This document shows positions 3,660-20,424 of a DNA stretch of 42,824 bases, one piece after another. Positions within the stretch are counted from its first letter, which is position 1, and the number at the start of each line of letters is the position of its first letter. The translations under genes and the position numbers were made by a program. The notes under the pieces were generated by a model that was not told the origin of the DNA, made no database searches, and saw only the letters and a list, made by a program, of their open reading frames with translations. Where the stretch lies: contig FLMG01003517.1 of NCBI GenBank assembly GCA_900088475.1, positions 1-42,824 on the forward strand. The letters are read 5' to 3'. Source of the DNA: Hyphochytrium catenoides. Its lineage: Eukaryota; Protista; Hyphochytriomycota.

Positions 3660-4623
3660 AAGAGAAATTAGAGACAGCGATGGATAGAGAAAGAGAGTCG
3701 AGCAAGATGAGGCTGCTCCCAGTTGCGAAATAGTTAGGGGATGCGTAAAGAGAAGGAAAGAGAGAGAGAGAGAGCAAACAAAATTCATAAAAAGCGTGTG
3801 AGAGAAAGAGAGACGTAGAGGAAGAGAGAGGCGCGAAAGGCTCACTCATGCACTTGATTCGAGACAACAGCGGCGGGATGGCCGGGACCCTGCGGATGAA
3901 GAGCAACGGAAAAGTTAACTATTTCTTCTCAGAAGAAACAAGTGAAAGGAAGAGAGAGAGGAGAGAGAAGAGAGAGAGACAGAGAGAGAGTCACAAGAGA
4001 GAGAGAGAGACAGACCAGACAGAGAGAGAGAGAAAAGGGAAACGAGTAGCAACTGCAAGGAGAACATTTTAGTCCTAAAGAAGAAAGGGGCCGACTTAAC
4101 GAAATAAGGGCGAAGCACAACGAGACAAGGGGAGAGCAAAACCGCGCTCGCGCTCGAGAGAGAAATTGAGAGAAGAAAGGAAACCTGTTTAGCCTACAGA
4201 ATGGCAGGGGAGGGACTAGCATGGATAACAGTACTTTGGAGACAGAGGAAGAAGCAAAGAAAAAGAAAGGCAGAACGCAAAGAGACAGAGAGAGCCACAG
4301 AGAAAAGGAGAGACAGAAAGAGAGAGAGAGACAGCAAGAGAGAGAGAGAGAGAAAGAAAGAGAAAGAGAGAGAGAGAAAAAGAGCCTACCATGCCCTGTA
4401 CGAGGACCTGTCCCTGAGAGACACTCTGAGGTTGAGGCGGAGGAGAAGAGAGAGAGGAAGAAGGAGGAGAGAAAGCACTCTTCACAGCGCTGAGAGCGCC
4501 ATTCACGGCTCCGCTCACGGCGTCCAGAGCTCCACCAGACCCAGCGTTCTCTCCTCTCTCCTGAGCGCTAAAGAGCTGGAACCTTGAGTCGCAGTACTCT
4601 GTGTCGCCGTCAATCTGACAGCA

Positions 4624-4667
<44 letters not shown>

Positions 4668-5324
4668 CGAAAGAAGAGGAAGTGAGAGAGAGAGCGAAAG
4701 ACCGGAGAGAGAGTGTAGAAGAAAGAGAGAGAAGGCAAAGCGGAGAGTTTTGTATATTGAAGGTTGTTCGTCACGAAAGACGGAAAGAGAGAGAGAAAGG
4801 GCAAGAGGGACGGAGAAAATGTTGAAAATTTTTCAATGAAGACGAGTCCAGTATACGAAGGATGAGAGAGAGAGAGAGAGGGCAAGATGGAGAGAAACAG
4901 GATTAGGAAACCCGATAGAGGGAAGACGGAGATGCGAGAAAGAAAACAACCAGGATTGAGTACAGAGCCCACATAACTCTCCAGCAACAGGGAAAGGAGA
5001 GTACTTTCTCTCTCTCTCTTTTTCACCAACTCTCTCTCTCTCTCCTGTTCAAGGCTTTCTACAGGCCCCTTCTTCTCCACCAAGCTTCTCTCTTTCTCTC
5101 TCTTTCTCTCTCTTCTCTCTCTTCTCTCTCTCTCTCTCTCTCTCTCTTTCAAAGAAGTGCCTACCGCTATGAGTCTCTCCCATATAATGTTGGGCTGGTC
5201 CTCGAAACCTGCGTCAGTGACGAGAAGGAAGATGTCGCCCTGAAACTTGAAGAGAACGCTGAAGTGATTGTTCCGGAAGAAAACAGCCAACTCTCTCTCC
5301 TTTACGTCCTCGTGAAGCTGTCAA

Positions 5325-5364
<40 letters not shown>

Positions 5365-5810
5365 CCGAGGGAGAGAGCGCCATAGTGAGAGGCCAAATGG
5401 GTGGAGAGGAACGGGAAAAGAAAGTGACATGCAGGGGTGCAACGGTAAGGAGAGAGAGAGGAAGAGAGAGAGAGAGAGTGAGAGAGAGCGATATAAACTC
5501 GAGAGAGAGAGAGAGAGTCAATCTCGACCGAAGGGAAAAAGATTGAGTAAAGGAAGAGCAGCAGAAGAAGAGAACTAGCTACGAGGAAGAAAGAACTAGG
5601 GGAAACGGTGAAAGACGAAAAGAAAATGCCAAAGAAGATTAGAGAGATAACACAAGACATACATAACGCGTGAGAGCGAAATGAAGGAGAGAGAGAGAGA
5701 AAGAAAGAGAGAGCGAGAGGGAGAAAAAGAGAGAGAAAAAGAAAGAAAGACAGAGAGAGAGGGAGAAAGCGAGAGAGTGGAAAGCGAGAGAACGATAAAG
5801 CGTTGTGAGT

Positions 5811-5862
<52 letters not shown>

Positions 5863-6233
5863 AGAGATGTCAACCTTGCGTATTCCATAATAGGTCAGCT
5901 GACTAGCAGTTGTGTTGAGAAATTCTTCTATCTTCTTTCCTTCCCCTAGTTGCCTCCGTCTCTCCTTACAAGAGGGAGAGACTGGGGGAGAGGAAGAGGA
6001 ACAACTGTCCATTGGTGTTACTCTCTCTCCTTCCTCTTCTTCTCTCTTCTCCTGTTTCTCATTCTCTCCTTTTCCATCCTTGCCTTCTTCAATAAGAGAG
6101 ACACCGCTGTCTTTCTCTCTTCGAGAAAGAAAGGAGCGATAAGCGATAATCTTTTCTATCAGCTGATTATAGGACTGGCTCCCGATGATCGCGCGCTGGC
6201 AAATGAGAGACAAGAAAGCAAAACATGAGTAGA

Positions 6234-6277
<44 letters not shown>

Positions 6278-7032
6278 GAAAGACACACTAAGAGATAGAT
6301 AGAGAAAAATAGATTAGAGGAAAAGCGAGGGGCGGGAGAGAGTGAGATCAAGAGACAAGACCCGCCCCTAGAGGTGAAAGAGAAGGGAGCAAAAAGAGAG
6401 AGAGAGAGAGAGAGAAGGCGAGGAGGTGGGGGAAGGAGGAGAGAGAGAACTAACGGTGTCTGTGTCTTCTTCCTCGACGAGCCAACCGTGGTAAAGGGTG
6501 ATGTCCAACATGTCGAAGACTGCCGCCTCCTTGGTGTATTCAAAGCCAGTGGTGCTTGAGGTCAGGAGAGGGAGAGAGAGAGAGAGAGAAAGTGAGAGAC
6601 AGATAGAGGCCTTCGATAGAAAAAGACAGGGAAGACTTTCTTTTAGGTAGATACTAACAAGAAACGCAACCGGTCAAGAGACAAAGCCATTGAAGAGAGA
6701 GAAAGAGGCAAATAGGGGCGAGGAAAGGAGCATGAGGATGGAGAGAAGATAGAGAGAAAGAGAGAGAAAGAAGGAAGAGAAAGAGAAGAAGAAGAAGAGA
6801 GAGGACGAAAACGAGAAACAAGAAAGAAGAAGAGAGCGATTGCCGAGGCATCTACCTGTTAAACTTCACATTGACGTCTAGACCCACGAGAAGGTGAGGG
6901 AGAAGAGATATCGCGTCGTCCAGATTCTGCTGCTGGTGCTCTGCAAGCTCCGGATTATTTAGCTTACAAACCAAAGAGAGAGAGAGCAAGAGAGAGAGAG
7001 AGCAAGAGAGAGAGAGAAAGAGAGAGAGAGAA

Positions 7033-7064
<32 letters not shown>

Positions 7065-7138
7065 GAAGGGAGGGGAGAAAGAGAGAGAGACAGCAAAGTG
7101 ATTTGAGGTCATGGAGCAAAGTAGAGACACCTTCAAAG

Positions 7139-7175
<37 letters not shown>

Positions 7176-7745
7176 AAGGGAGAGAGAAGAAGGAGGAGAG
7201 TCTAGCGCAAACAAAGGTAAAAGGAGAGAGGACGAGGAGCAGACTTTTCTGAACAGCCAAGGTAAGTTCATCAGAGATATCAGAAATAAGAGAGACACAG
7301 AACTGAGAAAAATTCCATAAAGAGAGAGAGAAGAAGAGCTGAGAGAGAGAGAGAGAGTAAAAGAGGTAAGAGAGAGTAGAGAGAAAAGAAGAGGAAAAAA
7401 GAGAGAGACAGAGAGACCCACACAAATGCGAAGAAAATTTCCATAAGGAGAGAGAGAGAGAGAAGGAGAGCTAAGAGAGAGAGAGAGAAGTATACAAGAG
7501 AAAAGAGATAAGAGAGAGAGAATAAGCGGAAGAAAGAGAGCGACAGAGAGAGAGAGAGAGGAAGAGAGAGAGAAAGAGTACGGGCTTATTGGTCTCCAGC
7601 AGATGATCCGCAATGATGCAGATCAGATAATCGGCAGTGACCTAAGAGAGAGCCACAATATTAGTTCAATCAGACCGGAGTGTGGGAAAGAGAAGGAAGA
7701 GGAAGAGAGAGACTGAGACAGAGGGTAAGAGAGAGAGAGAGAGAG

Positions 7746-7782
<37 letters not shown>

Positions 7783-8136
7783 GGGAGAGAGAGAGAGAGA
7801 AAAAGTGGTAGAGAGAGAGAAGGAGGGAGAGAAGGAAGAGGACACGAAGACATAAGTGGAAAGAGATTAGACGATGGAGTGCTCTCCGTTCTGCTGTACC
7901 TGGTTATAGTCTCTGTGAATAGAAATGTTACCTCTAAGGAGTAGAGTGTTGCCTAGGCAAGGAGAGGGAGATGGCGAGAGATAGAGAGAGAGAGAGAGAC
8001 ACACACAAGTAGTGAGTAGGGGACGTAGGAAAGACCGAAGGAGAGAGAGCGACAACAAAGAAGAAAAGGAAGCAGAAAGGTTGACGGAAGAGAAAGCGAC
8101 GCAGTAAGCGCCAGAGATAAGAGAGAGCGAGAGGGA

Positions 8137-8192
<56 letters not shown>

Positions 8193-8609
8193 GGTCGTAC
8201 AGATAGCAAGCAAGGGACAAGGTCCATTCTCTGCCTGAAGAAGAATGGCAACCTCTCTCTCTAAGAACTTCGTTCTCTTCACGCGGTAGATGGAAGAGGG
8301 AGGAGGGGGACGAGGGAGAGAGAGAGAGTCTGAAGGTTGAGTCTCTCTCTCTGTCTCTGAAACGGCAGCCGCAGGCACTGAAGGAACAGGACAGAGAGAC
8401 TCAGAAGTAGGAGTCTCTCTTCTTTCCTCTTCCTCTTGAGTCAATGGAGACGACTTGTGACGCAGATCTTGGTCTGTCTCTTTCTCTCCCTCTTCGGCTC
8501 TCTCTTCTCCTTGAAGCTTCTCTCCTGCAGGTTCTTCGGATGGAGAAGAAATGGAAGAGAAAGGATGTGGGAGAGAGGCGTCGTTGTCGCCTTCCAACCT
8601 CTCTTCCAT
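2992..8609 (-). CDS. MINDY1: MINDY-1/2 (FAM63) family K48 deubiquitinase with MIU motif and C-terminal CaaX, ~587 aa
   Basis: Exons 8609-8201, 7952-7900, 7641-7582, 6962-6856, 6554-6455, 6195-5875, 5317-5165, 4614-4390, 3889-3846, 3617-3542, 3207-2992; all phases match (1764 nt). Motifs: ILLQAENGPCPLLAICNTLLL (catalytic Cys), GLDVNVKF, LYHGWL, SYNQL, TASQLTYYG, VFFRNNHFS (catalytic His), LVTDAGF, WERL, DGD. MIU-like DADYLFALELQ; ends KRKKKDDSCCIQ*. Confidence 0.93.
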
Positions 8610-9025
8610 GTTTCTCTTCTTTGGCCGGAGGATGTTTCCTCTCTTTCTGAGAGAGAGACACCAAGGGGAGATGCTGAGAGCGCAAAGCGATGGAACTAGC
8701 AAGAGGCAGGGCGAGAGAGCAAGAAGAGAGAGAGAGAAAAAGAAAGAGAGAGAGAGAAAGGGAGACAAAAGTGCAGCCTAGCGATGACGATGAACGAACA
8801 AGTGTATCTGCTGTCGGTGGCGAGAGCTTGTAGAACTAAATGTCTTCGTCCGAAAACTTTGTGAGCGGAGGCAGTGATGGAATGAGGCAGTGATGCGAGA
8901 GAGAGAAGAGAGAGAGAGGAGAGGGAAGCCGAGAGAGAAAGAGAGGGAGACAGAGAGAGAGAGAAAGGAGAGTGAGAGAGAGAAAAAAGGAGAAAAGAGT
9001 GAGAGAGAGAAAGGAGAGAGAGAGA

Positions 9026-11422: not shown

Positions 11423-11947
11423 AAGAGAGTTAAAATTATCTGCAATTCGCGAAAAGATACCCTTCGTCTTCTCGTCTTCTTAAACAGCATTTTCGCTCTC
11501 TCTCTCTCTCTCTCTCTCTCTAGTTCTCTTCCCGTCGGAGAAGAGACACCTCGTGGTCCACCGTCTCCCTCTTCAGAGCACAGTCGAGGTGTGACCAATA
11601 ATCTTAGGAAACTGGTCAGCAGAGAGAAGAGAAGATTCGTCGACCAAGAGTTTGACCTGGACCTCACCTGTAAGAGAACAAATAGGGCCAGCCTATTCTC
11701 TCTCTTCCGCCCCTCCCTCCCTCTCTCCTTTTGTCATCTTTCTCTTCTTTTTCTCACCATCTTGGCTCTTTCTCGCTCTTTTTTTTTCAGAACTGTGCTC
11801 TCTTTCTCTCCCGTCAGAACCTCTTTTATCTCTACCTCCACACCCTTCCTTTCCCCGTTTCTCTCCCTTTGTCTCTCTCTCTCAGCGGTGTCTGCCTCAC
11901 TCGTATTTTCTGTTTTATCCATTCCCCTTGCTCCTCCCCTTTCTCTC

Positions 11948-12034
<87 letters not shown>

Positions 12035-13519
12035 CTTTCTCTCTCTCTGTTTCTCTCTCTCTCTGTCTCTCTCTTTCTCTGTTTGTGTGTCTGTCTTTTC
12101 ACTTCTCTCTTGTCTTTCTAAATACCCTGTCTCCACTGGTTAATCCTTCTTCTTCTCTTTCTCTCTCCCTTGGCAGATATAACGCCTCGCGTCATTGCGA
12201 TGGGATTTCCTGCTGAGAAGCTAGAAGGCGTTTACCGTAACAGTTACACGGTAAGAGAGAGACACAGAAGGAAAGAGAGAAGAAGAGAGAGAGAGAGAAA
12301 GAGAGAGAGAGGGAGAGAGGAAGGGAGAGGGAGAAAGAGAGATACAGAAAGAAAGAGAGAAGAGACCCATAGAGAGAATGAGAGAGAGAGAGGGAGAGAG
12401 GAAGGGAGAAAGAGAGAGACAGAAAGAAAGAGAGAAGAGACTGAACTTGACTCTTCCTTTTGTCTCTCTCTCCCCCTCTCTCTCTGTTTGTCTCTCTGTC
12501 TCTCTCTGTCTCTCCTTCCCGACCTCTCTCTTCTCCCTGTTCTCTCCTTTCTCAGGATGTTTACAATTTTTTGGAGAAGCGGCACCAAGGGCACTATAAG
12601 CTTTACAACCTGTAAGAGAGATGACACAGCTTCTCTCGCTCCTATTTCTTCTCTCTCGTTCTCTCTCTCTCTCACACACCCTGCCTCTCTCTGTTTCTCT
12701 CCTTGTGTCTCCTCCCTCTCTCTCTCTCTCTCTCTCTCTCGCGGTTCCTTTCGTATTAGCCCTTGTCCTGACTCCTCTCCCAGGTGCGCGGAAGCCGAGC
12801 GAGATTATGAACCTTCGAAGTTTCATGGCAGAGGTGAGAAAATGAAGAGAGGCAGCAAGACAGAAGCAGAGAGAGAGAGAGATAAGAATGACAGGGGGAA
12901 GTAAGAGAGAAACAAAAGAGAGAGAGAGAGAAAGATCAGCGAAGAGTGAGAGAGAAAAATGGGAAAGAAAGCAAGAAGGAGACGGGCAGACAGAAAGAGA
13001 GGGAGAGAAAGAGAGAGAGAAAGAGAGAGAGAATCAGAGGAACAAAGGGAGAGGGAGAGGGCAGAGAGAGAGAGAGATCAGCAGGCCGTCCTCTCTCACT
13101 CTGTCTTGCAGTCTCCAAGTTCCCTTTTTATGACCACAACCCGCCGCCCGTCAGACTCTTCCAAGAGTTTTGTGAGGACGCTGACCAGGTAAGCCAGGCG
13201 GGATATATCTCCCTCTCTCCCCCATCTCTTTCCCTTCTCTCTCTCTTCTCTCTCTCTTCTTTCTCTCTTTCTCATTTTCCTACGTCTCCCTTCTCTTCTC
13301 TCTCTCTCTCTCTTCTCTTGTCTCTCCCTTGCCCAGTAACTTTCTCCTCTTCTCCTTTTACAATAAGCTGAAGTTTCCCAACGGTCTCTCTCTCCTTTTC
13401 TCTCTCTTTCTCTTTGGGTCTCCTTGTGGAACCTGCTTATCCCTTCCCTATATTTTCCCTTTGCTGCTTGTCTTTCTGTTCTACTTCTAAACGTCACTCT
13501 ATTTCGTTTAGTTCTAATC

Positions 13520-13566
<47 letters not shown>

Positions 13567-13765
13567 CTCTCTCTCTCTCTCTCTCTCCACAGTTCCTCCG
13601 CTCCCATCCTCTGAATGTGATTGCTGTGCATTGCAAGGCGGGGAAGGGTCGGACTGGAGTCATGATCTGTGCCTTTCTCCTCTACTGCGGAGCCTTCTCT
13701 TCCTCTCTCGGCGCTACCAAATACTATGGACTGGCAAGGACTCATAACAACAAGGTAAGGAGGAC

Positions 13766-13802
<37 letters not shown>

Positions 13803-13998
13803 AAGGTGATGGACTTACATTGAGAAAGATAGGAGGGAAGAGAGAGACAGCAAAAGCAGGACTGTCAACTAATATGTCTTGGCTCTTCGATCTCTCTCTC
13901 TCTCTCGCTCTCCTTCAATCGTTCCCCCTTCCTTCTCTGCCACTCTCGGATCCTTTACTTTACTTCTCTCTCTCTCTCTCCCTTTTCTTGTCGACTCC

Positions 13999-14082
<84 letters not shown>

Positions 14083-14122
14083 TCTCTCTTTTTTTCTCTC
14101 TCTCTTTTTTTCTCTCTCTCTT

Positions 14123-14160
<38 letters not shown>

Positions 14161-14738
14161 TCTTTCCCTCAACCCCAATACTCGATCGTTTTGTAGGGCA
14201 TCACAATTCCTTCTCAAGCTCGCTTTGTTGGTTATTTCTGTGAGTTGCTAGGGCTGGACTCTCTCCCTCGAGAGACAGAAGAAGAGAGTCTCTCTCCTGA
14301 AGCTTTAGAGAATCTTAGGGACTTTGTCACGCAAGAAGTAGAGAAAGGAATGAGGAGACGAAGTGCGCCTTCTCCCTCTCTCTCTCGTTCTTTCTCTCCC
14401 TCTCCGACCAGCCCTCGCGCTGGGAGCTTTTCAGACCCTTCTTCTTTCTCTCTCTCTCCTCTTCCCTCTCTCTCTTCCGCTGCCCAGGCAGAAGTGGAGA
14501 GACGAAAGACAGCAATTTCCCAGTGTCTTCTCCCTCTCTCTTCTTTGCGTCGTGCTCTCTCTCCTCCCTCGCGGCCTCTCTTTCTCTCTTCTCTCCGTCT
14601 CCATGGCTCTCCCTTTCTCAAACATTTCTCTCCTGTCATTAAAGTGGAGTGCGGAATGTGGAGAGGAGAAGAGAGTCAGAGGCTCTCTTTCAAGTCTTCG
14701 GTAAGAAAGAGAAAGGGAGAGAGAGAAGAGAGAGAGAG

Positions 14739-14794
<56 letters not shown>

Positions 14795-15032
14795 GTGGAG
14801 GGAGAAAGAAATCAGGGGCGGGGGAAGAGAGAAACGGGAGCGGAGGGAGAGAGAGTGAGAAAAAGAAGAGAGAGAGAAAGAGAAGAGAGAGATGAGAAAG
14901 AGAGAGAATGAGAGACAGAGAGAGAGGGGAGGCACTGGGGGAGACAACAAGAGAGGAGTGAGAGAAATGCAAACGCTGTAATGTGGGCTCAGTGAGAAAG
15001 GATCAGAAACAAGAAGAGACAGAAAGCCTTCT

Positions 15033-15072
<40 letters not shown>

Positions 15073-15567
15073 CAGCGCTATCCAAGCTGCACACTTGTCC
15101 GAGAGAGAGAAGACTGGGAGATTCTCTTTCCTTCTCTCGTTGTTTGGGAAGAAGTGAAGGTCACGGTCCTGGCAGGCAGCAAAAGAAAGAACTTTCCTTT
15201 TTCTCTCTCTTCCCGGCCTCTCTTCCACTTCTGGTTCCATACAGCCTTTGTTAAAATGGAAGACGGAGAGAAAGAAGGAGAGAAAGAAGTCTCTCTCTCT
15301 CTCTTTCTCGAGAAGAAAGACCTGGACAAGGCAGTGAAGGATGTGACGCACGGACACAAGCTCTACCCCAAAGATTTTGCTGTTACTCTCAAGTTTTCTC
15401 TCGCGGAAGAGAGAGACATCGCGACTTCTCTCTCTCTTTATAGGAAAGAGAGAGAAGAAGAGAAGAAGAAAAAGGGAGGAAGTATGATGAGCGTTCTTTC
15501 TTTTCCTTCTCCTCGGGCGTCCTGGGCCTCTTCTTCCACGGAAGTATCGACAAACACGGTCAATTGA
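10182..15567 (+). CDS. PTEN: PTEN-family phosphoinositide 3-phosphatase (phosphatase + C2 domains, long N-terminal extension), ~667 aa
   Basis: Exons 10182-10293, 10437-10636, 11193-11323, 11524-11669, 12177-12250, 12556-12611, 12784-12833, 13112-13188, 13593-13754, 14197-14700, 15076-15567 (2004 nt, in frame). Motifs: [48 protein letters not shown], active site [20 protein letters not shown]; C2 motifs [11 protein letters not shown] and LEKKDLDKA. The first three exons are low-complexity and less certain. Confidence 0.95.
11940..12075 (+). repeat. (CT)n microsatellite, representative of the tracts filling almost every intron and intergenic region
   Basis: Directly visible long CT run in PTEN intron 4. 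Confidence 0.95.
14002..14052 (+). repeat. (GTCT)n tetranucleotide microsatellite in PTEN intron 9
   Basis: About 12-13 perfect GTCT units. Confidence 0.95.
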
Positions 15568-16034: not shown

Positions 16035-16178
16035 TTACGTTCTCGGCTTCCAAAATAGTTCTCCAGAGAGAGAGAAAGGTCGAAGAAGGTTGCGGGAGAC
16101 TAAAGTCTCAAGAAGCAGCTCAATCAGTTCCTCACTGAACTGAGGAAGAGCTTCCTTTAGCTGGCGCATGGACTACCC

Positions 16179-16244
<66 letters not shown>

Positions 16245-16549
16245 AGAAAAGAGAGGACGAAAGGAGAGAGGAGAGATAGGGCGAGAGAGAGGAAAGCACA
16301 GAGAGAGAGAGAGTAAGGGGAAGAGATGAGGGCCAATGGAGAGAATGAGTTATGACCGCCGATGTACGAATAATCAAGAAACATAGACACCACAATAACA
16401 GAGAGAGAGAGAGAGCGAGAGAGAGCGAGAGAGAGCGAGAGAGAGAGCAAGAGAGAGAATGAGACAGAGAGGCATAGCAGCTAAAGGAAAAAGTCAACGA
16501 GATCCACGTCCACACTTACTGGTAGCCCAAAGGAGACAGTGATGGGGAA

Positions 16550-16582
<33 letters not shown>

Positions 16583-16828
16583 GAACAAGAGATGGTGCAT
16601 AAAGAAAAGAGAGAAAACACAGAGAAATTTGGGCACTCTCATACGCGTCTTTAGGTGTTCTCACCATCGCCGCTGGCTGTCCACCATTCTTTCTGAAGAA
16701 ACAAGAGTAAATCTCTGTGATCTGGCGTGCCCCGACCCCTTCCTGCAGGACAAATAACAGGGAGAGAGAGAGAGAGAGAGAGAGAGGCAGTTTGTGAGAA
16801 GAGTGAGAGAGAGAGAGAGGTAGTTTGT

Positions 16829-16866
<38 letters not shown>

Positions 16867-18067
16867 AGAGATAAAACTGGAATATCAACATGTAGAAAGA
16901 CGACTTGAGAAGGAAATAAACAGCATAAGAAAGAGACAGAGAGAAAAGAGACCTTTAAACCTTTATAAATGGTGCAGTTAGGCACAAGAAGAGAGAGAGG
17001 AAGGGAAGGTGAGGGAAGAAAGAAAGAAAGAGAGACAAAAAGGATAGTGAAGAAGAGAGAAAGATAGAGAGAAAGATGGGAAGAGAAAAGAGAAAGGGAA
17101 AGGAGAAGACAAACAAAAAGAACAAAGAAAAGAATAGACAAGAAAACACAAAGAAAGGAGAGAGAGAGAAAAGATATCGCCAAGAAAAACATTATCTCGT
17201 GTCTCACTCTGAAGAGAGGAGGGAAGAGAGAAAGACTGAAAGCTGGAGCAGGCTCATCCTCTGTCTCTTGAATGCGTGCCAAAGTTCTCTCCTTGCCTGC
17301 AGAGACGGCAAAGTGAGCGAAGGAGCAAGAGAGAAAGAAAGAGAAAGCTAGGAAGAGAAACACGGGAGAAGGGAGAAAGAGAAGCAAGGGACGAATAGGG
17401 CAACATTGAGATGAGGAAAAGAATAGGAGAGAAAGAAAGGGAGAAAGAGAGAGAGAGAGAGAATCACAAGTCTCCCAAGCCTAAACAACCTTCAGGAAGA
17501 GAAACACCAGGAGAGAGTGTGAAAGGTAGAAGTGAGAGAAAGAAAAAGACAGAGAGAGAGAGAGAGAGGACTTTACCTATGTCTGTCCCTACTGCAGTGC
17601 TAAGCCCCGCCAAGCGATTGGAGAGAGGAGTTCTCGGTGTCATAGCCGCCAACCTTGTGCTTATAAGAGGAGAGGGAACGGTGGGCGTGGGAGGAGAGAG
17701 AGGAGAGAGAAGAGTGTCTGAACGCTGAGTCTCTCTGGCAGGCTCAGGAGGAGAGAGAGCCGGAGAGAACGCAGGCACTCTCGTCTCTTTCTCTCTCTTT
17801 TCTTCGGTGAGAGAGGAGAGCTCTCTCTTTATAAAGGAGCCTTGCAGCATCCGCACGTGGGTCGGGGGCGAGAAGAGCTGAGGCGTTTGAGGGGAAGCTT
17901 CGGAGAGAACTCTGCTCGTTTCGTCTCTCTCTTTCTCTCTCCCCCTCTCTCTCATCTCACTATGAGAGAAGTTGAGAGAGGGAGTGTGAAGGTCAGGCCC
18001 TGGGGCAGAGGAGGAAGGCGCCATAGAACTCTCTGAGCAGCTCATCGCTGAGTTCCTTGCCTGCAAG

Positions 18068-18110
<43 letters not shown>

Positions 18111-19230
18111 AGACAGCACGTGGGATTGAGCCCAGGGAGGGAGCGGAAGGAGTGAGAGAGATGCAGATGAGGAGAGAGAGAGCGAGAGAGAAAAGAACTA
18201 AAGAGAACACGACGAGGAATCAAAAGGGCCAAGTGTGCCACAGGAAAAAGAGAGAAGGAACAAGCCAGAGTAAGAGAAAGAGAGAGAGAGAGAGAGAAAA
18301 TAAGAGCGAGAGGGGGACAGGATGATTGAATGTAAGGCCATTATTGAGTAAGAGAGAGAGTTAAAGATAGAGAGAGAAAGAGACAATTAGCGGCGCTACA
18401 GAGATGGACGGAGAGAGACACCGCAAAGAGAGAATTTGATTGAAGGAAGAAACAGCTAGAGAAAGAGAGAGAGAGAGAAAGAGAAGCGCCGCTTCCAAGT
18501 TAAAAGAGGTCTTGAACCTGTATAAAAGGCGTGGATATTGGGGGAGACATATTATGAATGGGAGAGGTCTCCAACATGCTCTGGAATTCAGGAGACTTGG
18601 AAGCCTGGATAAGGAAGAAAAGAAAGAGAGAAAGAAAGAGAGAGAACGAGAGAGAGAGAGAAAAAGAAAGAGAGAGAGAGAGAGAAAGAGTGAGCCTTCT
18701 GTCAAGGAGACGGAAGTCAGAGCAGATCTTTCCAAATCTGAAAGAGAAACGTAGCGGAGAAAGAGAAGACATATGGAAGGGCAATCAGCAGATAGCCCCA
18801 GGAGAGACCCGCCAAGTCAGCTGAAAAAGAAAAGAGGGAGAGAGAGAGAGAATAGGGAAGAGAGAGAGAGAGAGAGAGCACCGAGAGGGAGGAAGGACAA
18901 CACATACGAAAAAAAAAAACCCTCTCGAAAAGAGAGAGACAGAGACAGAGAGAGAGAGAAAGAGAGGTGCCTTGTAAGTGTACCTTAAAGAAAGGAGTCG
19001 TAACGACGAGTGGAGGCGATCCAAGGGAAGAGAGACTATCGTTTCCTCTCTCTCTCTCTCTTTCATCAAAACTTCCATCCTCTCTCTCTCTCTTGCCTCT
19101 TCTTCTCCCTGTCACTGCCCGCGCCAGACCAGAGCGGAACTCTGGGGTGGGAATGGAGTTCTCACTGTGAACCTCGGAGTGAGAGGAGATGACAGATTCG
19201 TGCAGGAACTCTGACGAGGTATCATGGGCC

Positions 19231-19275
<45 letters not shown>

Positions 19276-19406
19276 AGGGGGAGGGATTAGGGGAGAAAAG
19301 ATAGAGACCGAGCAGAAACGAAGAAGCGTGTACGAGAAAAGAAGACAATGGAACAAGAACAAATAGAGATGGGAGCATACAGGTGGGGAGCATGAGAGAA
19401 TTGAGC

Positions 19407-19440
<34 letters not shown>

Positions 19441-20047
19441 CCGGGGTGGGGGTGGGGTGAGAGAGAGAGTGAGTGGCATGGCCAGGAGGAGGCATGTGCG
19501 AGAGGCACGACGAAGCAAGAACAAGACAGAGGTAGAGAAAGACCTAGAGAGGATGAGAGGGCCAAATGAGAGACATGCTTCCTAAAGAAACTAAAGAGAG
19601 ACAGTCAAGACGACGGAAGAGAGGGAGAGAAGAGAGAGAGAAAATATAGTAGGATCGTGGACTAATAGGAGGAGATGGTACTCTAGAGCAATCCGCTGGG
19701 AGGAGAGGATGGAGAGAGAGGGAGAGAAAGTCTGAGAGAAAGTAATAGCCACTTTTATCGAGAGAGAAAAAAAGAGACAGAGAGAGAGAGAGAGAGAAGG
19801 AACAAGGAGCTGGAGACCTGCGCAGCCAGTGACCTCATCCTCATTCCTTCACTTGTACGTTCAAAGTGCTGCTTCCATGCCTTTATAGCGAAGATAGGAA
19901 AGAAAGAGAGAAAGAGTCAAGAGAGAGAAAAGCAGGTACATGGAGATCATAGAGAGAAAGTGAGAGAGAGAAAGACAAAAGGGAGGAATTAACAAGGAGA
20001 AAGGGGCATAGTAGAGCCGCCGATGAGAGGAAGACAGAGAGAGAGAG

Positions 20048-20101
<54 letters not shown>

Positions 20102-20186
20102 GATGAAGAGAGGGGATTAATGCATTGACCCCAAAGTAGTTCAACAAAAGTAGAGAGAGAGAGAGAAGGACATGACTCCAGAAAAC

Positions 20187-20217
<31 letters not shown>

Positions 20218-20424
20218 TTCTCTCACCTGGCTGGAGCTATGGACATCTCTCAAGTGTCCTTTGAACGCCTTGGCCAGCAGAAGGATCCTGGCGACGGTGG
20301 CGTTTGCCTTGTTTAAGTTCGTGTCAATGTCCTGCAGCTGCCTCGTGATCCGCTGCTGCTGCAGCTCCGACGCCGCCGTCAGCTCAGGAGCCTCATAGGC
20401 ATTGGCCGTCTGATAGACTGGCAT
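16035..20424 (-). CDS. ASK1: DASH/Dam1 complex subunit Ask1-like kinetochore protein with S/P-rich linker and extra C-terminal globular domain, ~460 aa
   Basis: Exons 20424-20227, 19880-19818, 19229-18984, 18604-18518, 18060-17577, 17296-17208, 16742-16665, 16172-16035 (1383 nt, in frame, TAA). The N-terminus QQRITRQLQDIDTNLNKANATVARILLLAKAFKGHLRDVHSSSQAWKQHFE matches the Ask1 domain pattern as I recall it (EQxITxxLQxIDxNxxxA...WKQFFE). The symbol means the kinetochore Ask1, not the MAP3K. Confidence 0.75.

Follow-up and report, generated by a model that had tools for sequence, protein, structure and literature searches.

A gene for the Dam1/DASH kinetochore subunit Ask1 in Hyphochytrium catenoides, with eight exons and a predicted C-terminal winged helix

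Ask1 is one of the proteins that make up the Dam1/DASH kinetochore ring, a microtubule-coupling complex. In yeast Ask1, AlphaFold2 work found only residues 2-69 to be structured; the tail contacts the Ndc80:Nuf2 shaft and contains sites for Ipl1 and for cyclin-dependent kinase 1 (Cdk1), which control it (PMC9993044). The Dam1 complex (Dam1-C) was reported in 2017 from oomycetes, Hyphochytrium, labyrinthulids, Rhizaria, Ichthyosporea and others (PMC5439489), and in 2023 was argued to be ancestral to eukaryotes (PMC9998035). The genome of Hyphochytrium catenoides has 3.64 introns per gene, with a mean intron length of 208 bp (PMC5795050). Analyzed here is a stretch of 42,824 nucleotides from this organism (contig FLMG01003517.1), referred to as the window. 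Its minus strand very probably carries a complete Ask1 gene, coding for an N-terminal domain, a linker rich in serine–proline and threonine–proline (SP/TP) dipeptides and a C-terminal winged helix, in an intron-rich stramenopile near the oomycetes. An Ask1 gene is expected in this organism, because the nearest named kin of the gene are oomycetes, in which Dam1-C was published in 2017 (PMC5439489).

Positions 20424-16035 of the minus strand form one gene of eight exons and about 460 codons in a single frame with GT..AG borders, and the interval 16035-20424 runs exactly from stop codon to start codon. From the ATG at 20424 the frame of exon 1 continues for 66 codons (MPVYQ...HSSSQ) to a GTGAGA donor after position 20227. 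Following an AG acceptor, exon 2 begins at 19880 with AWKQHFERTSEG... and opens with AWKQHFE. An initial sequence-only reading had placed an intron just before a WKQxFE motif and had held that the open reading frame (ORF) track truncates the domain. Both points stand: intron 1 is 346 nt long, and the 187-residue ORF at 19861-20424 continues into it. An exact look-up of this read-through ORF matched no record. In the features listed below, identities refer to the homologous contig L001 and, for exon 8, also to the homologous contig L003 and to oomycete Ask1 proteins.

20227..20424, minus strand: exon 1, 66 codons, containing the start codon and the greater part of the helical Ask1 domain at the N-terminus (ELQQQRITRQLQDIDTNLNKANA...), PF08655; 68% identical to L001 671-820
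19881..20226, minus strand: intron 1, 346 nt, GTGAGA...AAAG, pyrimidine-rich and laden with (CT)n, dividing the Ask1 domain just ahead of WKQHFE
19818..19880, minus strand: exon 2, 21 codons (AWKQHFERTSEGMRMRSLAAQ), the end of the Ask1 domain; L001 887-922 reads WKYHFDRMSQTM, 58% identical
18984..19229, minus strand: exon 3, 82 codons, in which the disordered linker begins, with the motif GSPPLVVTTPFFK at its end; 52% identical to L001 1042-1266
18518..18604, minus strand: exon 4, 29 codons, with the second motif MSPPISTPFIQ at its end; 59% identical to L001 1332-1427
17577..18060, minus strand: exon 5, 484 nt with a phase 1 end, SP/TP-rich linker; 42% identical to L001
17208..17296, minus strand: exon 6, 89 nt, PAFSLSLFPPLFR, predicted N-terminal strap packing on the winged helix; 76% identical to L001 2054-2140
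16665..16742, minus strand: exon 7, 26 codons (EGVGARQITEIYSCFF...), predicted helix 1 of the winged helix; 79% identical to L001 2208-2264
16035..16172, minus strand: exon 8, 45 codons and stop, predicted helices 2-3 and beta-hairpin wing (EELIELLLETLVSRNLLRPF...GELFWKPRT*); 75% identical to L001, 59% to L003 and 50-60% to oomycete Ask1

Exons were searched singly, and statements about the full-length protein rest on its natural relatives, L003 and P0007-P0029. In Pfam, exon 1 alone scored 24.4 bits with DASH_Ask1 (PF08655) against a curated cut-off of 20.7 (E 2.7e-5, profile positions 6-29), and this was the sole family above its cut-off. The best match of exon 1 in the PDB was 6cfz_A, the Ask1 chain of the Chaetomium DASH structure, at E 0.013. 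In a search with a profile of the N-terminal domain, A4, built on an alignment of 11 rows with window exon 1 as the first, 6cfz_A came first (E 4.5e-14) and yeast Ask1, 8q84_P, second (E 1.1e-4), ahead of a third chain at E 0.08. Through the family alignment, the AWKQHFE of exon 2 aligns with FWKQFFE of 6cfz_A, and the W-K-x-F-F/E motif that closes the second helix is present. The hidden Markov model match, the two solved chains and the oomycete orthologues described below all bear out the original proposal of an Ask1 homologue.

Published comparisons of profiles connect Ask1 with Dad1 and Dad4, and structural evidence pairs it with Dad3 (PMC5439489, PMC9998035). The gene might on that ground be a paralogous small DASH subunit of the Dad1, Dad3 or Dad4 type, deeply homologous to Ask1. 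Against this, Pfam scans of exon 1 and of L003 at E up to 10 gave no Dad family, and the A4 search of the PDB at E up to 1 gave no Dad chain of 6cfz or 8q84, nor any Duo1 or Dam1 chain. The protein is also long, with an Ask1-like tail, whereas Dad subunits have fewer than 100 residues. A Dad-type identity is hardly credible, and assignment to Ask1 is retained.

An exon 1 search with HMMER over 1.84 billion representative proteins found two true relatives, P0001 (64% identical) and P0006 (42%). The corresponding ORFs, P0001/L001 and P0006/L002, are exon 1 read-throughs ending ...Q|VR, and the position of intron 1 is common to them and to the window. L001, the Logan assembly contig behind P0001, holds all eight exons in colinear order with introns of only 60-120 nt, and as read from its sequence it has seven of seven intron positions and phases in common with the window gene. 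Over 154 ungapped codons, the proportion of nonsynonymous differences (pN) was 0.17 and that of synonymous differences (pS) 0.84, the synonymous sites being saturated. L001 therefore comes from a diverged species, and the gene is under strong purifying selection.

L003 is a 1055-nt contig, found by scanning JGI (Joint Genome Institute) metagenome contigs with an alignment of exon 8. Its single uninterrupted ORF of 330 residues scores 28.1 bits with PF08655 over profile positions 6-57 of 64 and contains the Ask1 domain, two TTPY[LM]K motifs, an MTPRTPLS motif, an FxLxLFPxxFQ strap and the same C-terminal domain. Because L003 carries this whole architecture in one ORF, exons 1-8 are one gene. 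A word search with L003 returned oomycete proteins of 450-560 residues that align with it from end to end (Pythium, Phytophthora, Plasmopara, Peronospora, Peronosclerospora and Aphanomyces); all carry PF08655 and several are named 'DASH complex subunit ASK1'. Window exons 1, 5, 6, 7 and 8 each match oomycete ASK1 proteins in colinear order. The comparison supports the window gene as a full-length orthologue of these annotated proteins.

Four other proteins from the exon 1 search with HMMER, P0002-P0005, are long, repetitive coiled coils and were classed as false positives. Such hits, the restriction of exon 1 alone to profile positions 6-29 and a fold, the winged helix, that DNA binders typically have would fit a chance coiled-coil resemblance at the N-terminus of a winged-helix protein unrelated to Ask1, such as one that binds DNA or acts in transcription. 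The family profile nevertheless matches only the two solved Ask1 chains, L003 extends the match to most of the profile, WKxFF stands at the correct place and the winged helix is not basic. We regard chance resemblance as very improbable next to an Ask1 gene.

The sequence-only reading had also attached taxonomic value to the gene. This holds insofar as the nearest named relatives are oomycetes, but the value is modest, since Dam1-C had already been published there (PMC5439489). The closest kin are not oomycetes but the environmental sequences L001, L003, P0006 and P0007. The oomycete ASK1 proteins, namely Pythium oligandrum Poli38472_003997 (P0009), Plasmopara halstedii P0013 and those of Phytophthora, Peronospora and Aphanomyces, share with the window gene, in the same order, the Ask1 N-terminal domain, a TTPY-type motif, SPLLxTxLKAMTPxTPLSNRL, an FxLSLFPxxFQ strap and the ...LLDTLVSRRLLRPF...W domain. 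The window gene is set apart by its seven (CT)n-rich introns and by having two TTP[YF] motifs where the oomycetes have one clear copy. Its product of about 460 residues compares with 450-560 in oomycetes, and identity to them is 27-39% in exon 1 and 50-60% in exon 8.

The linker of the window protein, encoded by exons 3-5, contains 19 SP/TP dipeptides in 272 codons, about 2.3 times the roughly eight expected from composition. The SP/TP-rich character described in the sequence-only reading is thus borne out, and the SPP...TPF motifs that it quoted are found at the 3' ends of exons 3 and 4. The first, GSPPLVVTTPFFK, lies at 19022-18984 and corresponds to GSPPIVVTTPYYK in L001 and SPKMPPLCTTPYLK in L003. 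The second, MSPPISTPFIQ, lies at 18550-18518 and corresponds to MSPPISTPFIK in L001, TPEMPLLLTTPYMK in L003 and LPxMSRTPYM in oomycetes. L003 also has two copies of the TTP[YF]-type motif. The pair of SPP...TTPF motifs suggests that an exon-plus-motif unit was duplicated. In each case the motif finishes its exon, K or Q coming next and then a phase-0 intron, and the placement is the same in L001.

The most conserved linear motif is formed by the last 37 codons of exon 5 (17578-17688, TPTVPSPLISTRLAAMTPRTPLSNRLAGL...), which correspond to L001 1870-1985 and to about 620-700 in L003. Within an otherwise fast-evolving disordered linker, SPLxSTxLxAMTPxTPLSNRLxG is near-invariant from the window to Phytophthora and Aphanomyces. 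With its two TP sites, it is a candidate phospho-regulated binding site. The SP/TP enrichment only suggests that the window Ask1 is a Cdk substrate; oomycete orthologues contain 1-6 full Cdk consensus sites.

No other part of the protein is as well conserved as the C-terminal domain of about 85 residues, encoded by exons 6-8. An AlphaFold2 model of this domain in L003, built on an alignment of 11 sequences with L003 as the first row, had a predicted local distance difference test (pLDDT) score of 90.6 and a predicted template-modelling score (pTM) of 0.81. In the model a short strap is followed by H1, a short strand, H2, H3 and a beta-hairpin (H1-b1-H2-H3-b2-b3). The strap residues, which belong to exon 6, have a pLDDT of about 91, and exon 7 aligns with helix 21-41 of model ma91279b8f901. 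In a full-length model of L003, residues 2-57 form a confident N-terminal helix and residues 245-330 a confident winged helix, with disorder between them at about 70-240.

Structural searches with the modeled domain led to winged helices throughout. Every match listed by Foldseek was one, although none was close (E 0.015 or more). Over 48,161 chains, VIA-align gave a top Z of 9.5 and 65 chains with Z of at least 8, and the best 50 of these 65 were all winged helices, among them Fur, MarR, TFE, Z-alpha, ORC, RPA32C, ESCRT-II, APC2 and MCM. In these models the canonical winged-helix fold is certain but generic. The match carries no functional information, because bacterial Fur and MarR DNA-binding domains score equally well. 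Look-alikes of exon 8 found with a protein language model point the same way: ten of the ten best with an assigned family belong to winged-helix families. The window protein would share the fold, given these look-alikes and the 59-79% identity of its exons 6-8 to its relatives. A hit of exon 8 to the CUE domain scored 16.3 bits, short of the 21.1 required, and was set aside in view of the winged-helix fold.

Sequence searches with the domain gave less. No Pfam family covers it, and its profile had no match among PDB sequences, the 292-residue yeast Ask1 included. A word search limited to L003 residues 240-330 found no match at E of 0.1 or below; relatives 45-57% identical in this part exist, which makes the result a limit of the tool and not absence. 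A language-model atlas search with the winged-helix part of L003 gave no usable result.

The net charge of the domain is -4 to 0, which argues against a basic microtubule binder of the Ska1 type or a DNA binder and in favor of a protein-binding role. The partner of the winged helix would most likely be neither the microtubule nor DNA but a protein, such as a regulator, the Ndc80 complex (Ndc80c) or another tail of the DASH complex. The Ska complex and Dam1-C usually exclude each other, and the microtubule-binding domain of Ska1 is the functional analogue in organisms with Ska. It is likewise a winged-helix-type module ending a kinetochore microtubule coupler, but the Ask1 domain amounts to a minimal winged helix of 85 residues, for which homology to Ska1 and microtubule binding are unsupported. 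A Ska1-like microtubule-binding reading was rejected, Ska1 being absent among the 50 best structural matches and the charge being -4 to 0. Protein-binding winged helices at the end of flexible tails resemble the domain in their H1-b-H2-H3-wing order with Z of 8.3-8.6, namely the RPA32 C-terminal domain (1dpu), ESCRT-II (1u5t, 3cuq), the WHB domain of APC2 (8a3t) and the MCM winged-helix domain. These show no sequence relationship to the Ask1 domain.

Fungal Ask1, represented by Chaetomium thermophilum (6CFZ chain A) and Saccharomyces cerevisiae (8Q84 chain P), shares with the window protein the LQxIDxN...WKxFF signature of the N-terminal domain and a long, disordered, phosphorylatable C-terminal extension. 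The difference lies at the end of the tail, since the yeast protein is structured in residues 2-69 only (PMC9993044), whereas the window-type tail would end in a folded winged helix. A shape search of the ESM Atlas bears on the history of this difference. Its highest template-modelling score (TM-score), 0.77 over 80 residues at a root-mean-square deviation of 1.9, belonged to a cluster named 'DASH complex subunit ASK1 family', of which 98% of members carry PF08655, the representative has 659 residues and the commonest taxon is Zoopagomycota. This modeled match is a lead that early-diverging fungi, through a zoopagomycote Ask1, may share the winged-helix domain although the yeast protein is without it. 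Within the library searched, no paper pairs Ask1 with a winged helix; in the one paper where Ask1, the DASH complex and winged helix occur together, the term refers to Ska1. A tentative reading, to which we give slightly less than even weight, is that the winged helix is an undescribed, ancestral second folded domain of Ask1, present in the oomycete lineage and at least in zoopagomycote fungi and lost in model yeasts.

Several observations weigh against the assignment of the locus as a complete Ask1 gene of this architecture. Its splice junctions are predictions from sequence and from relatives. Intron 2 starts with a weak donor, GTCTCC, and the 3' boundary of exon 2 is the least certain junction. 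In three metatranscriptome runs from one study, only 5-6% of sampled words were present. The window linker (exons 3-5) contains no full Cdk consensus, S/T-P-x-K/R. The structure models were made on the relative L003 and not on the window protein.

The weak donor, together with microsatellite-like GA runs within exons 3 and 5, might also be taken as signs of a decaying or unexpressed copy, or of a separate downstream gene made up of exons 6-8. Every exon is nevertheless open and in phase, and pN is far below pS in the comparison with L001. Exons 5 and 6 of L001 are a mere 66 nt apart, and both ends of the protein lie in one ORF in L003 and in all the oomycete proteins. Decay or a split locus is thus highly unlikely, and the preferred reading remains one complete Ask1 gene. 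A stronger-looking donor within exon 2, GTGAAG after ...ACAAG, was rejected because it breaks the frame with exon 3, while L001 keeps phase 0 there.

The introns of the gene measure 280-588 nt. They are 73-82% pyrimidine on the coding strand, compared with 35-62% in its exons, and (CT)n runs make up 12-35% of each intron; these composition counts omit intron 3 positions 18835-18873. Long (CT)n runs lie towards the 3' end of the introns (16173-20226), and a GA-type run at the start occurs in intron 1 only. The L001 introns are without such (CT)n repeats in the sequence as read. Because the orthologous L001 introns are 60-120 nt long and lack these repeats, intron expansion seems specific to the window genome.

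Outside the Ask1 gene, one neighbor converges on its 3' end.

11591-15567, plus strand: PTEN-like phosphatase gene, convergent with the Ask1 gene; C2 domain in its last part at 14983..15564, PF10409 PTEN_C2, E 1.1e-11

The convergent PTEN-like neighbor is kept in L001 and serves as a synteny marker. Elsewhere in the window, a gene for a MINDY-type deubiquitinase (4610-8768, minus strand) is divided by (CT)n-rich introns; its ORF at 4613-5290 matches PF04424 at E 1.8e-15.

By homology with the solved fungal complexes, the helical N-terminal domain, some 70 residues from exons 1-2, would supply one helix of a five-helix-bundle arm in the DASH heterodecamer, and the protein would in this way be incorporated into the DASH ring. 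The disordered linker of about 270 residues would project from the ring as a tail, as in yeast. Its three motifs, the two copies of [ST]Pxx...TTP[YF]xK and SPLxSTxLxAMTPxTPLSNRL, are probably phospho-regulated docking sites, comparable to those of the yeast Ask1 tail; two of the three contain TP sites. At the end of the tail the winged helix may act as a tethered docking module, with linker phosphorylation tuning its reach or its binding to a partner. As the sequence-only reading had proposed, the organism presumably uses a whole Dam1 complex.

The gene adds one more Ask1 orthologue in the lineage of oomycetes and their relatives and agrees with the current view of Dam1-C as ancient and vertically inherited (PMC9998035). 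In practical terms, it provides a correct model with eight exons where ORF-based tracks cut the gene short. The conserved winged helix and the three short motifs offer a testable handle on the Ask1 tail outside Saccharomyces. If the zoopagomycote structural match holds, this would be a domain of the DASH complex missed by work on yeast. Should the domain be ancestral, the winged helix would close the phospho-regulated tail as a folded module docking on Ndc80c or some other partner, and the purely disordered tail of yeast Ask1 would be the derived state.

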